Positions 1,764 through 23,436 of a DNA stretch of 64,000 nucleotides are shown piece after piece. The DNA lies in sequence record OR608733.1; one strand, 5' to 3'. Position 1 is the first letter of the stretch, and every line of letters starts with the position of its first letter. The notes below the pieces were generated by a model. It was not told the origin of the DNA. It was given only the letters and a program-made list of their open reading frames with translations, and searched no databases. Made by a program: the position numbers and the translations under genes.

Positions 1764-3797
1764 CTATCGCAGTTTACCACCTTTAACTAGTAAGTCATAT
1801 GGATGGTCATTCCTCATCTTGTTAAGGAAACTGCCTGGGTTATTTAGTGGCTCATGCTGCTTTTCGAAAGCCATCGCACCACCTAAACTACGACATTGCA
1901 TTAGTCTATTATATTTTTCAAATTGACCATTAATGCCGGGTTTAGGTAAACGATAGTCTCGATATTGAGCTGAACGGATCATCATAGCGTATATCAAGAT
2001 CTCACAATGGGAAATATTAAGGCTAATCTTTTCATTAGCCATTGTTGCAAATACAGGTAGTGCTTCAATTGGTGACTTGTAGTTTTTAAGATACGTTTTA
2101 GATGTATATCCAACTTTCTCAGTGCTTAGTTTACCTGCCTCGGCTGAGTCACTACCGGAATGTAAGAAACTTTGGAATCGTTTCATTACTTCATACATGT
2201 TTACGTGCTTATTTGGTAGCGTTAAGAATGGTAGGTTAAAATCAAAACCACGAAGACTAATGACGATATTGTCTCGCTGATCTAGTTCCCAACGGACCAT
2301 CTTAATATGCTTTAGCATTTCAATAGATAGACTAGCCCTACGGTTATACAGCGACACAGTCAGAACATCACCACACTCACCATTTACCTCATCATCATAG
2401 ACTAAGGCCAGGCTGGTTAGTTCAGTAGCTGAAGTAGCTGGATATGCAGTAAGGTCATCAATCATTAAAATGTCAGCAAGGTTTTCTGCCTCTGACCGTG
2501 CGATTACTAAACGATAATCCTTCTGAGTAAGTTCTTTCTTTAGATATAGTGTCTCTGGGATTTCACCTGTTCTTAAATAATTACTTTCAATTTTGCCAAG
2601 TTTATATTGTTCTACAGCAGAAGACGCATCGGTGTGTTTAGTAGACAATACTGCTGAAGTAATTTTGTCACCCATCGATACGGCAGCAACCTGACCGATA
2701 TTAGTTCCTTTTGGAATATTGATACCTAGTCGGCCATAACAAGTCATACAGATACCCTGACTATCTGGATGATTACATCCAAATACAGACCTGAATTTCT
2801 GTTTAGTTCCAATTAGGTGTGTTTCATTTCCACGGATCCAGTCTAGTTTACCATCTTCTTTTTGATAATATTTTCCTTTGAATGCTTTTAAAGTTAACTT
2901 AGTTACAGGATACTCAGCTAAGATTGTGGTCTTACAATCACCAGGATGTAGCCTTTGGACATATTGTGCAATAAGCTGAGATTTCCGGTTAAAGTATTCA
3001 GTTACTCGCAGTAGTTCTTTGTTATATAGTAGTGCTTTAGTACCTGAACGAGATTCAATCATATTCTCATACAGATTCCAAATACCATCAATATAACCAG
3101 TTGTTACCGGATATTTAAAGATATCTGAGTTAATGTCAGTTGGAAAGCCCCGCCAAGCAAATGCTTGTAGAAGCTGTTCAGTTTTCTGAGTACCAGAACG
3201 AAGACCTTCAATGATGCTGTTACCAATGAATTGGGTAGGATCATTAAATACTTCTTTGACTTTACCATAACTAATTTTTTCGATACCATAAGTAGTTGGT
3301 TCGATATTATGGTTAGCCTCACGTACCTTGGGATGATTATATACTTCAGCAATATCAAACATCGACAAGGTTGCTAGATATTCAGACAGTTTCACAGTGG
3401 TCTGATTATACAGCCAGTTCTTACCTTCAATAGCCAGTTTAGATAGTACTTCAGGATCTACTGTTTCACCTGACCAATCATAGATGTTCCAAATAGCCTT
3501 ATTTAAATGCTTAACCATGGCCTTAGATGTTACTCGGCCACCTTCAACATTTAGATAATCTTTAGGGTTATCAGTTAAGATGCGATTGAAATCGATATGG
3601 TGATCAGATGGAATTGGGCAATCTTTATAATGTTTAAGAGGATACCAACACAGAACGGATAATTTGGTAATACGGTCAACTGACACAACCGTTTTACCAT
3701 CATCAAATTCGATTAGATGCCATTCTGAAGGGAGTGACCATAAATCATCATAACTTAGATTTAGAAGATCACGTGCTTTATAACGATTAAGATTCAT
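1764..3797 (-). CDS. nvRNAP beta-prime-like subunit, C-terminal part (gp74-like)
   Basis: Zn-binding CNHPDSQGICMTCYG and NIGQVAAVSMGDKITSAVLSTKH (equivalent to beta-prime AVG..AAQSIGEPGTQLT.RTFH); 677 aa; synteny. Confidence 0.92.
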   Translation of the reverse strand: MNLNRYKARDLLNLSYDDLWSLPSEWHLIEFDDGKTVVSVDRITKLSVLCWYPLKHYKDCPIPSDHHIDFNRILTDNPKDYLNVEGGRVTSKAMVKHLNKAIWNIYDWSGETVDPEVLSKLAIEGKNWLYNQTTVKLSEYLATLSMFDIAEVYNHPKVREANHNIEPTTYGIEKISYGKVKEVFNDPTQFIGNSIIEGLRSGTQKTEQLLQAFAWRGFPTDINSDIFKYPVTTGYIDGIWNLYENMIESRSGTKALLYNKELLRVTEYFNRKSQLIAQYVQRLHPGDCKTTILAEYPVTKLTLKAFKGKYYQKEDGKLDWIRGNETHLIGTKQKFRSVFGCNHPDSQGICMTCYGRLGINIPKGTNIGQVAAVSMGDKITSAVLSTKHTDASSAVEQYKLGKIESNYLRTGEIPETLYLKKELTQKDYRLVIARSEAENLADILMIDDLTAYPATSATELTSLALVYDDEVNGECGDVLTVSLYNRRASLSIEMLKHIKMVRWELDQRDNIVISLRGFDFNLPFLTLPNKHVNMYEVMKRFQSFLHSGSDSAEAGKLSTEKVGYTSKTYLKNYKSPIEALPVFATMANEKISLNISHCEILIYAMMIRSAQYRDYRLPKPGINGQFEKYNRLMQCRSLGGAMAFEKQHEPLNNPGSFLNKMRNDHPYDLLVKGGKLR

Positions 3798-3827: not shown

Positions 3828-4751
3828 TCAATGATCAGGGGCATATTCTAATGCAATACCACTACATTCAAGCAGGTGATCAAACATAGCTACTGGGCGA
3901 GATCCACCAAATGGAATCTTTTCACGATCAACTGCAACTGGTACAGATGAAGGTTTTTCTGCTGTTAGCCAAGACTCGATAACCGCAGCATGCGCCAATG
4001 GGTTATTAGTTTGGTCTAAGATTTCAGCAGTCGGACCTGGACCAACTGTACAGTTATATGACCGAGTTTCAGATTCACCGAATGATCGAATAGCTGTTTC
4101 TCGACCAGGAGTACTAGCCCTATCAGCGTTGTTTAACTTAGAAGGTAGACCAAATGGTTGTGTTTTTACAGATGCTGCTGCTGACCAGTCTTCACCAATC
4201 TTTTCTAGTAGCATCATGTAAAGTGGACCCATTAAGACATTGTCTTTAGTTGTTACCCACTTACCAGCTTGATCTCGATAAGATACCTTCCCATAGTGTG
4301 GTCGATACTTATCGCTATTAATTAATTTGTTGACTGCTGCCATTAGATCCACTGGATCATCAACTGGTGCGTAGATATATGGGAATCCATCCATTAGTAC
4401 TGTTTTAACATGTTCTGCTGGATTTGGGTGTTCCATCATTTTACTATGCATTGTTGGAGCAATGATCTCATAGAAACCTAATAGTTCTTTAAATGCATAA
4501 TCAACCCATTGCGTATTACCCATTACACTATTTAGTTGTTGCTGGGTTGGTTTGGCATGTCGATCTAGTCCAGCTTCAACGCGTAGGCGTTGAGCTAGAT
4601 CTCGTGCAGCTGCGCCAAAACCATGTTCATAAATTCGACCATAATTTGAACGACGCATGGTTGAACCACCAAAGATAATTAGATCTGCCCTATTACCATT
4701 TTCGTCAATAGGCATATCTTCATCTTCCATTACCTTACAGATGACGCCCTT
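3828..4751 (-). CDS. nvRNAP beta-like subunit gp71-73, exon 2
   Basis: The frame extends upstream of ATG 4730 as KGVICKV-MEDEDMP..D(L)I, completing beta motif HGxKGV; also RSNYGRIYE and IRSFGESETR. Confidence 0.92.
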   Translation of the reverse strand, partial: KGVICKVMEDEDMPIDENGNRADLIIFGGSTMRRSNYGRIYEHGFGAAARDLAQRLRVEAGLDRHAKPTQQQLNSVMGNTQWVDYAFKELLGFYEIIAPTMHSKMMEHPNPAEHVKTVLMDGFPYIYAPVDDPVDLMAAVNKLINSDKYRPHYGKVSYRDQAGKWVTTKDNVLMGPLYMMLLEKIGEDWSAAASVKTQPFGLPSKLNNADRASTPGRETAIRSFGESETRSYNCTVGPGPTAEILDQTNNPLAHAAVIESWLTAEKPSSVPVAVDREKIPFGGSRPVAMFDHLLECSGIALEYAPDH

Positions 4752-5058
4752 CGTTATGTTCAGGTAAGTTCGCTACGCTTACCCCGCCTCTCGTATTGCA
4801 GGCAGCTGCATGTCACCATGCAGACCAGACTATATCTTAACCTTCACCCTAGGTGGTCAGGTCCCTCCCATTTCCACTCGCTTGAGTGTACTCCGCGTAA
4901 CCGGATAGTCGTTGAACGTTCAATCCATTTCTGGAAAGCTTCGCTGCTGATTGTCTCATTGAGATGTCCCAGCAATTAGAGAGGATTTACTTGACTCTTT
5001 CGAGATCAAGCAGGCAATTTGACAATATCCATTCCTGAGAGATGGATGGATATTAATT
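4752..5058 (-). ncRNA. Group I self-splicing intron, 307 nt, no ORF
   Basis: Core elements P AAUUGCUGGGAC, Q AAUCAGCAG, R GUUCAACGACUA and S AAGAUAUAGUC; exon 1 ends in U (5059) and the intron ends in G (4752); excision restores HGG|KGVICKV in frame. Confidence 0.93.
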
Positions 5059-18318: not shown

Positions 18319-18540
18319 TTATTTTGCTTTTAGCCATTCTTCTAATGGCGGTAAATACTTCTCATGTGCCCAGTTAATAATTGTTTCTACAACAGGACCC
18401 TGTAATTCAAGGTTACCTGAGATTTCATGTGGTTCATCAATAGATAGAACCCATGTATGTGGAGCAATGCGTTCAGTTGCTTTAGTTAAATACACATCAG
18501 GCATTAACGTAAGATTCAATTGATCGCCGTCAAAATCAGC
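18319..18540 (-). CDS. nvRNAP beta-prime-like subunit gp55-56.1, exon 2
   Basis: Begins ADFDGDQLNL; joined to exon 1 (..KAPN) it restores the catalytic NADFDGD motif. Confidence 0.93.
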   Translation of the reverse strand, partial: ADFDGDQLNLTLMPDVYLTKATERIAPHTWVLSIDEPHEISGNLELQGPVVETIINWAHEKYLPPLEEWLKAK

Positions 18541-19916
18541 CGTTATGTTCGGTATCAGTCGTTAATTGATACCCGCACCATTACGTGCAGCTCTAGCTCT
18601 CGCTAGAAGACCAGACTATATCTTCACCCTTCCTCTCGGAGTGGGGTGTCTCCCATTTCGGATCACTTGATCCTACATCCTATTTCTAGGACCGGCGCAC
18701 CTGGTGCCGTAATAGTCGTTGAACGTTCCACATATTACAATTAAGTAATTTAGCGGCTTCGCTGCTGATTGTCTCTACCTAATCATTTTCAAACATTCGC
18801 ACTTACTGTTTCCAGTTATGCTGTAGTTGATTAGTCTAATGAGAGTTTCCAGCAATTAGAGAGAACTCAACCCAATGATTACTCATTGGGGGAACTAGAC
18901 TTGATTAACTTAATAAGGTATTTATCAAGCACCCCATTCTTTTCAAAGATTGCTCTTCGAATAGTATTCGGATGCTTAATACCGACATCTCTTGCAAAGT
19001 GTGGAATACTTGGATACACTTTGGTAGTGTTCAAGATGGTGTCAGTTACTTCAATTGGAGTGCCTTTTCCATTACTAGGTTTTCCAAATGAGGCTTCAAT
19101 TTCTTTCTGAGTATATTTAGGGAAATCTTCAGGATTAGCAGTATATGAGAATACCAGACCATCCATGATTTCCTTACTACCTCTAACTAGATGGTAATAG
19201 GCTTTATTACGTTTAGTACCTAGTGCAAGTTCCATTTCTGCTAAGTTATGAAACACATGTAATGTCTTAGTCTTATAGTCTAAAACATAAACTGTCTTGG
19301 TACTTTCACGATCAGCAATCTTAGTCTCACCGGTAATAAATTCAAATGTGAATCTATTTCTATACGGCTTAGTCTTATGGTCACGTATAATAACCCAAAC
19401 CGTATTTTTATTAACTCCTAATGCCCGAGCAAGTTCATTCATCGAGTAATAAGTAGTCTTTTCACCAGTGGTAACATCAGTTGCAATTACCCGTCTATTT
19501 TCTTTTCTTAATCCATTTTTGTAAGCATGCTCAATGTTTTCACCACGAGTCATCCATTCCAAATTGGATGGTAAGTTATTATGTTTGTTGCCGTCTTTAT
19601 GATTGACTTCATATGTTGGTCCAGGAGATGGACCATGGAATGCAGTACAAATTAGAATATGCGCTCCCTTACTTTTTGATGTCTTTTCATCATTTTTTGC
19701 ACCGATATTGAGATATGTCCCAATTGATGTTTTAGTAAGGAAGAAATTACATATTCTATTTAACCGCTTATGACGAATCGTTCCTAAGTTACTAGCCTCA
19801 TAAGCTGAGTATCCAGGAATATCTCGCCATTCAATTTTAAATGAAGCCGGATCAAAGACGGACACTACTCCGTTTTGTTCCATTGTCTTTTACCTTATTT
19901 GGTTATTCAATTGTCC
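18541..19916 (-). mobile_element. Group I intron (1376 nt) carrying an HNH homing endonuclease
   Basis: P AAUUGCUGGAAAC, Q AAUCAGCAG, R GUUCAACGACUA and S AAGAUAUAGUC at 18600-18860; U at the 5' splice site (19917) and terminal G (18541); inserted between N and A of NADFDGD. Confidence 0.95.
18879..19883 (-). CDS. NUMOD4-HNH-NUMOD1 homing endonuclease (gp56-like)
   Basis: NUMOD4 (EWRDIPGYSAYEASNLGTIR), HNH (HILICTAFHG..VNHKDGNKHNNLPSNLEW) and three NUMOD1-like repeats (e.g. YYSMNELARALGV, VYPSIPHFARDVGI). Confidence 0.93.
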   Translation of the reverse strand: MEQNGVVSVFDPASFKIEWRDIPGYSAYEASNLGTIRHKRLNRICNFFLTKTSIGTYLNIGAKNDEKTSKSKGAHILICTAFHGPSPGPTYEVNHKDGNKHNNLPSNLEWMTRGENIEHAYKNGLRKENRRVIATDVTTGEKTTYYSMNELARALGVNKNTVWVIIRDHKTKPYRNRFTFEFITGETKIADRESTKTVYVLDYKTKTLHVFHNLAEMELALGTKRNKAYYHLVRGSKEIMDGLVFSYTANPEDFPKYTQKEIEASFGKPSNGKGTPIEVTDTILNTTKVYPSIPHFARDVGIKHPNTIRRAIFEKNGVLDKYLIKLIKSSSPNE

Positions 19917-21161
19917 ATTAGGCGCTTTAAGGCATAAAACTGACATGCTGATAGAATTATCATTAATGTCATCTTTTACTTTAGTAATAAAGAACTGCTG
20001 CGTAGATCCACGTTGAAGCGTTGGATTTCGGTGAAAAGTACAACCCATCCCTTTATAAGGGGCTGCTTCTGCAATTAGCTCTTTAAATAGATCTGCAATG
20101 ATTTGGTTATATTGAAGTACATTCTCATATACAAATGAGAATGCTTCACGAGTTGTCATGTTAAACTTTGCTTTTAGCTTGTTAGTTAGATGATACTTTA
20201 ATAATTGACAACCTACTCCCCACGGAATATGTAATTCATCATAATCATGCGGGTCACTAATAGAAGTGATTACTGCACGTGCCGTAGCGTTGAGACGAGC
20301 ACCAAACATGTGACGCCGAGCAAGACCAGGCTTTTGAGCAATTCGTGATTTTGCGTAGATCTCGTAGAACTGGCCATATAGTCTTAGTCCTCGCATAGTC
20401 CTATTCTGAGCTTTAATTGGACTAAGTGGTACAGATGATGCATCAATACTAGCGAAGGTTAAGGTAGCATCAATTGCTGCTTCAATTGGTTTATCTAAGT
20501 AAGTACCAGATGTGGTTGATTCTGCTACGAAACAGAGTTTAGAAGGAACTGGTAAATATTTAGGGAATAACTTATCTTTATTCTGAGCAACGAATTGAGC
20601 GAATTCGGATTTATTATTAGAGATAATATTTGCATCTAGTAGGAATTGGAAGATCTCATTGAAATTATCAATGAAGTGATTTAATCCTCTTTCAAATCCT
20701 CGATGCAGTAGCCTATCTACTTTCCTGCGTGTTTCCTTAGAACCAATAGATTCTACATCGTATCGATAAGAAGTATCAGTTAGATATGCTAAGAAATCGA
20801 ATTCTTTAGTTACTAGATATCCGGTTAGCATAATGATTAAACGTGGGTTAATTAGGCTACGTACGTGTTTTGGTGTACGAACCCACATTGATGGTTCGAT
20901 AGGGCGGCTAGAAGTATTGACAACTGGAGTATTACAAATATCACAGATTACTCCGAGTTTATGTGCGTCTTCGATTGCTCGACAATCACAGCTTACACTA
21001 CTTTCAATTGCTTCTGAATCTTGGAAATGAGAATAGAAATGTCTATCAAATTCTTCTTTCTCATCTGAGTTACTCGTATTGTAATCATTGGCATAAATTC
21101 GTTTACCCGTAAATTGATCATGAACTTCATTATGATCAACAACTTTGGCATAAAGACCCAT
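19917..21161 (-). CDS. nvRNAP beta-prime-like subunit gp55-56.1, exon 1 (spliced product 488 aa)
   Basis: Zn finger (CDC..CDIC), RRHMFGARLNATARAVIT, FHRNPTLQRGS and MSVLCLKAPN. Confidence 0.93.
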
Positions 21162-21185
21162 ACCAAACTCCTATTTATCGATTAA

Positions 21186-21229
21186 CAAAAAAAGGAGATA
21201 TAAGCGGCCCCCGAAGGAGCCGCTATATC
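21186..21229 (-). terminator. Strong intrinsic terminator of the chimallin transcript
   Basis: Minus strand GAUAUAGCGGCUCC-UUCG-GGGGCCGCUUAUAUC followed by UCC and 8 U. Confidence 0.88.
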
Positions 21230-21550
21230 AGTTTTTACAATGGACCACCAACGGAGCCTGGCCCGATCCTAGCGTCATCTACAAAGCTTAACCTCCGCTC
21301 TTCTCTGTAGCATACCGGCACTAGTATCATTTACCATCCATTGTAGTTTTTGATCACACGTTACCTTTTGAGTAACTCCTTTCGGTTAAGTGATCTATCA
21401 TCCTCGTGTAGTGATAGGTCGACCTAGACTAAGTCCACTAGTCGATTACTTCACGGAACCTACTCCTAACCGTTATCACCGAAGTGAACCAGGGTCGCAG
21501 TATTAGAATCGGGATGTTACTTATTTAACATCCCTATCTACCGAGGTATT
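21230..21550 (-). ncRNA. Putative structured ncRNA or long structured 3' UTR downstream of chimallin
   Basis: At least 8 helices, UUCG and GAAA tetraloops, G-U wobbles that work only on the minus strand, and no ORF. Confidence 0.6.
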
Positions 21551-21555
21551 TCCTA

Positions 21556-23436
21556 TTAGTACCAGGTACCCGGTGCATTATAGGAAGGAGCGCCGTAAGT
21601 TTGACCCATGCTGCCAGCCATGCCAACTTGTGCACTACCAGAAACAGCCATGTTACCCATACCGGTGTAACCAGCGAAGCGCTGTTGACCGAAGTTGGTA
21701 ATTAGGTTTTCCATGGTTACAGTTACACCAGCTGCTGCTGCTGCGGCATCCATTGCGGTGATGAATTTCGGGTTAAAGGTTAGACGACGAGCACGACCAG
21801 TATAGGTAACGTTACCTAGGTACATCTTGTCGAAGCCTTTACTGTTATTCATACGACGCACAATGTGGTCATTACCTACCTGAGTAGCATACCAGGTCTT
21901 CCACTCTTGGTCATTACCTTCAGACATGTTCATGGCACCTAGAACGTCAAGATCACGACGGTCGCTTAGTTCGCCATGCTCATCAGTGTAGTGACCGAGG
22001 TCTACTTCATGATGGTTGTCAAAGATAATCGGACCAGCTTCAGCTAGGTTATAGAACTGACGGAAATCAGTGCCGTATAGGTTAGTTAGAGCTTGGAAGA
22101 TCAGGCTAACTGCACGAGCTTGGTTTACGCCACCAGCTGCATCTAGGATGACTTGCTCAATAGCTGAGTTGTCGCCCATTGGATCGATATCGATCTGGAA
22201 TGCAGGGTTCTGGTTAACCATCTTGTTCATTAGCATTACGAAGTTGCTGTCGTCTGCCATGAATGCTTCGGTGCGAGTTTCAATCGCTTTACCTAGCTCT
22301 GAGTAATAACCAAGTGCACCAATATCACGCATCTTGCTAGTAGCGATCTTCGGCATTAGGGTACGAGCCCATGCCTGGGATGCAGTTGCACGATACGCAT
22401 TACCGAGTGTGAACAGCCACATTTCTAGAGTCCATGCTTGGATCCAGGATGCCTTACGAACGTCAGTGATAACGATGTAAGGAGTGAACTGCGGAGGTAG
22501 AGCTGCACCAGGTAGAGTTACGCCAAACATACCTTGTTGCTGGCCAGTGGTCGGAGTCCAATGTAGATCTACGAATAGACTAACTTGGTTTAGCTGGCTA
22601 TCGGTATCATAGAACTCGTTCTCAGGTACGTTGGTTTTCTTACCACGGCTAGTGGAGATGACCATGTCAGAACGGATCGGATTACCACAGCTATCTTTAA
22701 CCGGAATACCATTGTAGTCTAGGTTGCAGGTAAGCTGTTCGTTTTCTGCTTTGATGTGGGTCGCAATAGAGAACGGAGTCTCATTGTTACGACGTGCAAT
22801 AGCATCTTCACAGATATTAACGGATTCAACTAGTAGGTTCTTAACAGCTAGTTCATCTTTGAAGTCGAAGTCAGCATACACTGCACGTGGACCGGCAGAT
22901 AGTACTTCTAGACCAGGGATGTTGTAACGGTTCCGTAGGAACTCGCCGATCTTGCTCCAGTATTGAGCAGTGAATACATCACGCGGTAGTACCTTCTCTT
23001 CAATGATGTCATCAGTTAGACCATTGTTGATTTTGTGGGTACGGGGACGGATGCGAGTACCAGGTAGGTTATCGAGTACTAGAGTACGAACGAATGCCTT
23101 CATGGAACCATTGATATCTTTAGCTAGTTTAACAATGAGTAGACCAGCCATACCCACTTGTTGTGCATCGCGATCGAAACGATGGATATCGAAGTCATCA
23201 GGTAGGTCCTGATGGCGGATTGCTTCTTCTTTTACTTTAGTGAATACTTGTAGGGCATCTGCTGAACGAGCATCAGAGCCATCTAGCCGACCAGAGCGAC
23301 GCATTAGATGGTTAATGCCAGTAGTGGACCCAGGTGCGCCAGCCGGACGTTGAGCTTGACGTTGTGCAGTGGGTTGCGGAGCCGGAGCGGTAGCTTGAGT
23401 TTGAACGGTGCCGATTTCGTTTTCGTTAACAGCCAT
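21556..23436 (-). CDS. chmA: Chimallin, major phage nucleus shell protein (gp54-like)
   Basis: 626 aa with flexible A/Q/P-rich N-terminus and G/A/M-rich C-terminus; directly upstream of gp55; strong early promoter; visibly biased codon use. Confidence 0.9.

Follow-up and report, generated by a model that had tools for sequence, protein, structure and literature searches.

The DNA analyzed here (the window) comprises 64,000 nucleotides of sequence record OR608733.1, and its source is a phiKZ-type Pseudomonas jumbo phage. On the minus strand, the nuclear-shell gene chmA (gp54) is followed by a gap of 394 nt, by gp55, which encodes the N-terminal part of the nvRNAP beta' subunit, by the HNH gene gp56, and by the core of a group I intron. 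ChmA is 99-100% identical to its counterparts in phiKZ-type phages. Phages 6B and 124.01 of Pseudomonas share the region of the element described below at 100% identity, and phiKZ shares it at 99.2%. Of all ORF-free stretches in the 64-kb window, only one is longer than the chmA-gp55 gap; that one and the third in rank hold the two group I introns confirmed by Rfam. The original prediction placed about 325 nt of structured, non-coding sequence between the chmA stop codon and the terminator of that gene, and we found both position and content to be as described. The features of the locus and of related loci are collected in Table 1.

Table 1. Features of the chmA-gp55 region, of nearby introns, and of other chmA 3' UTR RNAs. 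Positions refer to the window unless retrieved-locus numbering is indicated.
Feature	Position	Strand	Detail
chmA (gp54) ORF	23436..21556	-	nuclear-shell gene
chmA stop codon	21556..21558	-	TAA; element begins 11 nt downstream
Domain I, four-way junction	21403..21545	-	RNAalifold; closing helix H1, 21545-21542 with 21406-21403
Arms of domain I	21540-21504; 21502-21461; 21454-21411	-	H2/H3; H4/H5 (UUCG loop); H6/H7
Hairpin D, three-way junction	21352..21395	-	closing stem H8, GAUCAC/GUGAUC
Domain E, multibranch	21238..21343	-	closed by 8-bp long-range H11, 21343-21336 with 21245-21238
Interior of domain E	21328-21265; 21262-21247	-	H12-H14; H15
Intrinsic terminator	21187..21229	-	14-bp stem with UUCG loop (21229-21197), UCC, seven U (21193-21187)
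gp55 start region	21159..21172	-	RBS AGGAG 21172-21168; ATG 21161-21159
gp55 (nvRNAP beta' N-part) ORF	21161..19890	-	
Group I intron	18591-18916	-	RF00028
Group I intron	4806-5034	-	RF00028, 84 bits
B-type motif	phiHQ 538-702; Psa21 4421-4560; RP13 2428-2600		retrieved-locus numbering
Third-type 3' UTR	201phi2-1 4256-4462; Phabio 4250-4530; Viktualia 4259-4500		retrieved-locus numbering

The terminator serves chmA and the element alike. It has the G+C-rich stem-loop and the U-run of an intrinsic terminator, it is conserved at the gene end, and it is homologous in all of the Pseudomonas chimalliviruses examined, including those that lack the element. A simple consensus scan made no call at this site because the U-run begins 3 nt past the extended stem. 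The element thus lies between the chmA stop codon and the chmA intrinsic terminator on the same strand, which is the position that defines a 3' UTR-derived ncRNA. No promoter-like site was found between the terminator and the gp55 start codon. Further, neither a sigma-70-like site nor an early motif of the TATATTAC type occurs within the element or downstream of it; promoter motifs of the nvRNAP are weak in general. Published work assigns one early and one middle promoter to chmA (PMC8244752), reports that chmA and gp55 are co-transcribed (PMC12571901), and describes the gp55 homolog of 201phi2-1 as having no promoter of its own (PMC11512511).

On the minus strand, the gap resolves into three folded parts and the terminator. 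The element, approximately 310 nt long, forms 108 base pairs in 16 helices according to RNAalifold, which was given ten distinct homologous sequences. Two junction strands of domain I are conserved, GGUUCC and UACA. Hairpin D encloses a CC-GAAA-GG mini-hairpin (H9) and the hairpin H10, and is the block best conserved over the three lineages in which the element occurs (the phiKZ group, the PA1C group, and PhiPA3). The multibranch domain E is separated from the terminator stem by a spacing of 8 nt after H11. Each of the three lineages preserves H1-H3, hairpin D, and the terminator, along with the junction strands GUAGGUUCCG and CUACACG. All of the pairings listed in the original prediction were recovered in this consensus, with the exception of a CTATCA/TGATAG hairpin. 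That hairpin is present in the window, conflicts with the covarying helices H1 and H6 as well as with H8, and is broken in HPP-Temi and W10-2; we therefore rejected it.

The single-sequence minimum free energy is -123.6 kcal/mol (z = -4.2) for the minus strand, compared with -100.8 kcal/mol (z = -3.2) for the plus strand. Eleven pairs of the minus-strand fold are G-U, and the RNA strand is therefore the sense strand of chmA. Both the wobble pairs and the energies uphold the co-orientation with chmA that had been proposed. When the terminator is left out, the z-score is an unremarkable -2.3 instead of -4.2; thermodynamics alone are thus insufficient for the claim of a structured RNA.

The evidence that carries this claim is comparative. 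Our alignment holds ten phiKZ-like and PA1C-like sequences, with PhiPA3 counted separately. Among the 108 pairs in ten sequences, 99.5% of the pair cells remain paired. Double-sided changes occur at eight pairs, one each in H1, H2, H3, H6, H7, H10, H11, and H12 (that in H10 occurring in HPP-Temi), five of which fall on the single branch between the phiKZ group and the PA1C group in an alignment that is shallow and spans three lineages. In a control in which the partners were slid by 1-3 columns, only 0-1 double changes were obtained and pairing dropped to 33-42%. The window and PA1C differ at 37 of the 160 unpaired positions; 12 of the 108 pairs are touched, and 11 of these 12 still pair, five through a double change and six via G-U. 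PhiPA3 contributes five further double changes, of which H3 and H8 have two each and H10 has one, and it breaks one pair of H10. H4, H5, H9, and H13-H15 are invariant and are therefore neither supported nor contradicted by covariation. The unpaired junctions and loops are also invariant between genera, for example GGUUCC, CUACACG, and the junction of hairpin D. Conservation and covariation in relatives, on which the original prediction depended, are therefore both found. At the level of sequence comparison, the compensatory evolution and the low rate of stem substitution show a folded RNA under ongoing selection, and it is very probable that a real, conserved structured RNA is carried on the chmA transcript.

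The PhiPA3 form is divergent. It retains H1-H3, and the covariance model R2 detects it with E = 6e-8, which is evidence for domain I; this domain contains large insertions in PhiPA3, and domain E was neither alignable nor recognizable there. Within the PhiPA3 domain I (1600-1775, retrieved-locus numbering), the H6 module "GUAGGUU ... hairpin ... GCGCU-AUC-CUAC" appears to be tandemly duplicated. The covariance model closes domain I on the first copy, and the sequence alignment uses the second.

No known RNA family accounts for the element. Rfam 15 gave no match to it at the gathering score in a scan of the whole window, none at E <= 10 in a scan of 21100-21700, and none at E <= 1 in seven homologous or related loci. 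The same scan detects two group I introns elsewhere in the window at 84-86 bits. In agreement with the original prediction, the element is not itself a group I intron: it has no RF00028 signal, and chmA and gp55 are both complete at the junction, with ChmA aligning to its homologs up to its end and gp55 aligning from residue 1. No covariance model of a riboswitch, a known cis-regulatory RNA, or a ribozyme in Rfam 15 matched; ARAGORN found no cloverleaf indicative of tRNA or tmRNA; and mimicry of rRNA was rejected, given that shared 8-11-mers and local alignments with E. coli 16S and 23S rRNA were no better than those of shuffled sequences. Models R1 and R2 found no second copy in the window (the intron sites included) or in related loci, and there is one copy of the element per genome. 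The element represents a new, narrowly distributed RNA family, and its architecture is more elaborate than that of the phage 3' UTR ncRNAs described so far.

About 50 phiKZ-like phages carry homologs that are 95-100% identical; those of the PA1C/PS119XW group are approximately 85% identical, and PhiPA3 has a diverged form. The range of the family is three genera of P. aeruginosa jumbo phages. Pattern scans followed by covariance-model filtering revealed no homolog outside the P. aeruginosa chimalliviruses in IMG/VR, JGI metagenomes, and one genome per GTDB species. The patterns for hairpin D and H2/H3 found only PA7 and PhiPA3 in IMG/VR, and locus retrieval based on ChmA in that database found PA7 only. 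A further 19 metagenome and 16 genome matches to the patterns were chance matches, all of them rejected by model R1.

The order of chmA followed by the nvRNAP beta' gene is conserved throughout the Chimalliviridae. In D6, Noxifer, RAY, Goslar, and Eowyn, the chmA-gp55 spacer is only about 85-105 nt long and is essentially the terminator. Most chimalliviruses have no more than a terminator of about 90 nt at this site. The element is therefore an accessory insertion, a cassette placed after the stop codon and before the terminator. The history of this cassette differs from that of its flanks. Between phiKZ-type phages and PA1C, the element is 87% identical, compared with 65% for the chmA 3' end and 66% for the gp55 5' end. 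Between PA1C and PhiPA3, the corresponding values are about 71% (with large indels), 72%, and 74%. That is, the flanks of PA1C are nearer to PhiPA3, and its element is nearer to phiKZ. Further, the phiKZ-like phages SL2, PA7, T2P, and W10-2 have an H12 region of the PA1C type. In the window and in phiKZ, a cluster of linked substitutions (21311-21332, minus strand) lies in and just 3' of the 5' strand of H12, reading AUGAUAC...GGUAUG versus AAGGUCC...AGAGCG. It creates the ATG of a spurious 31-codon ORF, allows a possible 4-bp alternative hairpin, and puts an A-G mismatch into H12. That other phiKZ-like phages have the PA1C-type version at this place suggests a recombination patch.

The phage phiHQ provides a further case. 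Its flanks are 99.7% identical to those of PA1C on both sides, and domain I has given way to approximately 310 nt of unrelated structured sequence, which begins just past the stop codon and reaches the base of hairpin D; hairpin D, domain E (183 bits with model R1), and the terminator are retained. phiHQ is thus a natural recombinant. The discordant histories of element and flanks, the PA1C-type H12 regions, and the phiHQ swap thus show, so far as genome comparison can, that RNA modules have been exchanged by recombination among P. aeruginosa jumbo phages that share a host. Two modules are separable: domain I, and hairpin D with domain E. No single module is universally required, since PhiPA3 has no conserved domain E and phiHQ does without domain I. 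At this locus of phiHQ (391-932, retrieved-locus numbering), the replacement begins with structured sequence unrelated to the element and further comprises a hairpin resembling a terminator and the core of another RNA, here called B-type; the whole phiHQ spacer has a z-score of -7.

These distributions bear on two roles that had been offered for the element, namely scaffolding of shell assembly and export of the chmA mRNA. A core role of either kind is unlikely, because many chimalliviruses, such as those with the short spacers, lack the element; half of it, moreover, can be replaced, as in phiHQ. For the same reason, its absence from many nucleus-forming phages, we do not consider it a core component of the phage nucleus.

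Other structured RNAs are found in the same slot. The chmA 3' UTR of Psa21 carries a different long non-coding stretch, the core of which is homologous to the replacement in phiHQ. The unrelated Ralstonia phage RP13 has this B-type core as well, immediately before tRNA-Leu, whose 5' end it abuts. Over the three sequences, the B-type RNA shows covariation at six pairs in two helices, and its UACGGU/ACCGUA pairing, which is invariant, would form a pseudoknot; there is no Rfam match. Part of the B-type sequence resembles a sigma-70 promoter (TTGACC, about 17-19 nt, TATAAA). A pattern search for further B-type RNAs returned a single match, which lies inside an ORF and is attributed to chance. Yet further chmA 3' UTRs, of 170-240 nt, are found in 201phi2-1, Phabio, and Viktualia, with sense-strand z-scores of -3.0 to -4.6. 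This third type opens with a GAAA-capped hairpin (GGGAUC-GAAA-GGUCCC), and its terminator is followed by an extra small ORF and then by the gp55 homolog. In Psa21, positions 4295-4345 (retrieved-locus numbering) hold a putative three-way junction laid out like hairpin D, with a stem, UUAA, a 2-bp GAAA mini-hairpin, and a second hairpin. A model of hairpin D only (R3, with its outer stem off by one column) gave no match in Psa21 or 201phi2-1, a negative result of little weight.

The original prediction stated that the element had not been described, which is not quite true, because a peak had been noticed earlier at the PhiPA3 site. In ChmC-eCLIP of PhiPA3 at 45 min, Enustun et al. 2024 (PMC11077065) observed high coverage peaks in a short unannotated region between chmA and gp54, and they read these as a possible small regulatory RNA, describing neither a structure nor a family. 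This region is the homologous site, and the RNA is therefore expressed late in infection and within reach of ChmC crosslinking. The proposed binding of ChmC thus finds some support in the peak, which reflects coverage and not enrichment, for a protein that binds phage mRNAs with little specificity (PMC11077065). The gp203-gp204 spacer, where PhiPA3 has its other eCLIP peak, bears no relation to the element. In Grad-seq of phiKZ at 10 min, just two other ncRNAs were flagged (PMC8545117); a separately sedimenting species is therefore not obvious early in infection. The element is described neither in the dRNA-seq and Grad-seq reports nor in the main text of the ONT-cappable-seq report, and our literature search found no paper that pairs chmA with a 3' UTR element.

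What, then, might this RNA do? We propose that it would be made as the 3' untranslated tail of chmA mRNAs ending at the common terminator, and also as the spacer of chmA-gp55 transcripts that read through. Probably having no promoter of its own, it would ride on the very strong early and middle promoters of chmA. It could then accumulate as a compact, nuclease-resistant RNA, and its specific fold would act as a protein-binding RNA and not merely as a protective 3' end. The candidate partner is ChmC, the sole one with any experimental hint (the PhiPA3 eCLIP). We infer such a stable, protein-bound RNA of specific fold from the invariant junctions, the multi-way architecture, and the eCLIP peak. 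As a mode of action, a stable RNA that is part of the chmA transcript and is bound by protein is the likeliest of those considered, if still short of probable. The interpretation put forward in the original prediction is, overall, partly supported.

Chief among the rivals is an action purely in cis: the element would tune the stability of the terminated chmA mRNA or the efficiency of the terminator and so set the ratio of ChmA to gp55, much as the lambda sib retroregulator or a 3' stabilizer does. Such a role would fit the placement of the element, with the stop codon on one side and the terminator on the other, and gp55 appears to depend on read-through. Further, the unrelated structured RNAs in the same slot of Psa21, 201phi2-1, Phabio, and Viktualia suggest that the position itself may select for structure. 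However, a terminator hairpin by itself protects a 3' end, and most chimalliviruses have nothing more. The conserved unpaired junctions and the multi-way junctions exceed what a stabilizer needs, and long perfect helices of the RNase III type are absent. We judge a purely cis role to be somewhat unlikely; the remaining alternatives rank lower.

Another possibility is that the element is a selfish or decaying mobile RNA, such as a remnant of an intron or insertion, that is tolerated in a permissive intergenic hotspot and has no function for the phage. The patchy distribution, the cassette-like boundaries, the horizontal exchange, and a neighborhood rich in group I introns and HNH genes are all consistent with such an origin. 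Nevertheless, the compensatory evolution and the scarcity of stem substitutions speak of ongoing selection on the fold, Rfam yields no intron or ribozyme match even at E <= 10, no second copy exists in the window or the genomes, and no gene is interrupted. A functionless remnant is thus quite improbable.

The order of a structured RNA, a strong terminator, and a gene without its own promoter also recalls a riboswitch-like leader or attenuator, or an antitermination RNA like put or EAR, that would control read-through into gp55. The H15 loop, GGCUCC, even copies the 5' arm of the terminator and could pair with the 3' arm. However, this candidate competitor amounts to 6 bp against a stem of 14 bp and is absent from PhiPA3, and no structured domain overlaps the terminator stem, which forms independently in both the MFE and the centroid structures. 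D6 and Noxifer have the same arrangement of terminator and gp55 with no element, and no riboswitch family matches. Attenuation is therefore very unlikely. Finally, that there is no RNA element at all, and that the stretch encodes small proteins or is a DNA-level site (an origin or a protein-binding array), is extremely unlikely: two ORFs of 31 and 38 codons are annotated inside the element in several GenBank records, but the start codon is absent from eight of the ten sequences and stops or frameshifts occur in others, and the many G-U pairs, the strand-asymmetric folding energy, and the retention of pairing through G-U intermediates make sense for RNA alone. The CDSs annotated inside the element are probably spurious; they are automatic "hypothetical protein" calls of 31-62 codons, as in OR608733.1 (155-271 and 331-426 of the retrieved locus) and PP968062.1.

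A broader reading encompasses other nucleus-forming phages of Pseudomonas. In these, the chmA 3' UTR could be a dedicated expression slot that delivers interchangeable, horizontally traded structured RNAs at very high dose from the first minutes of infection, to act in trans; we think this improbable as matters stand. The RNAs so delivered may include the A-type described here, the B-type of Psa21 and phiHQ, and those of 201phi2-1 and Phabio. If this were true, they could be decoys or scaffolds for RNA-binding proteins of the host or the phage, for example in ChmC-dependent RNA handling at the nucleus, in host takeover, or in counter-defense against RNA-targeting immunity.

chmA is the most studied gene of the nucleus-forming phages and is among their most strongly expressed early genes. 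A covariation-supported fold of more than 300 nt on the chmA transcript of phiKZ is therefore a concrete, deletable object. It bears on how these phages handle RNAs and on what the PhiPA3 ChmC eCLIP peak is, and it adds RNA modules to the genes and introns that co-infecting jumbo phages trade with one another. The generality of these points is limited, however, given how narrowly the element is distributed and how many relatives lack it.

Among known systems, the closest in kind are other ncRNAs derived from phage 3' UTRs: 3'UTR_PHIKZ298 of phiKZ, about 100 nt long (Gerovac 2021, PMC8545117), and ncRNA1 and ncRNA2 of PAK_P3 (Putzeys 2024, PMC10914365). Like the element, these lie between a stop codon and the terminator of the same gene and are conserved in their genus, and their expression is inferred from the parent mRNA; they lack a transcription start site of their own, as the element probably does. 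In contrast, the element is 3-4 times longer, has multi-way junctions, is supported by covariation, and is modular and exchanged between genera. GOLLD, ROOL, and HEARO in Rfam are likewise ornate folds on phages or mobile elements whose functions are unknown or recently emerging. The element shares no sequence or structure match with them, is smaller and of very narrow range, and is embedded in a 3' UTR, whereas they are free-standing. In flaviviruses, compact folds of the 3' UTR (xrRNAs) survive the decay of the mRNA, and the resulting sfRNA accumulates and binds proteins. The likeness of the element to these is one of analogy only; there is no homology, and bacterial decay enzymes differ. 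The sib retroregulator of lambda, put of HK022, and EAR of Bacillus are cis-acting RNA structures near terminators that alter the fate of the upstream or downstream cistron. The element differs from sib in having no long helix of the RNase III type, and it bears no similarity to put or EAR; its relatives manage with the terminator alone.

Within the same genome, the group I introns resemble the element in being long, ORF-free, highly structured, and mobile between co-infecting jumbo phages, whereas the element lacks an RF00028 signal and interrupts no gene. The intron at 4806-5034 is probably the one that belongs with the HNH gene gp72 and the nvRNAP gene gp71/gp73. The other lies in the nvRNAP beta' gene gp55 (window 18328-19992, minus strand), a gene divided within its catalytic NADFDGD motif. 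The first exon closes with ...KAPN, after which a short tail outside the region of homology runs to a stop at 19890; the HNH gene gp56 (19883..18879) and the group I core (18916-18591) come next. At about 18540 the reading frame is taken up again, starting from ADFDGDQLNL..., and it continues to 18328; this part is 86% identical to the C-terminus of PhiPA3 gp54. A functional subunit therefore needs splicing. For the predicted introns of phiKZ, Putzeys 2024 (PMC10914365) reports no splicing evidence. The Goslar homolog of gp55 has the same first part of 1272 nt, followed by an annotated group I intron.
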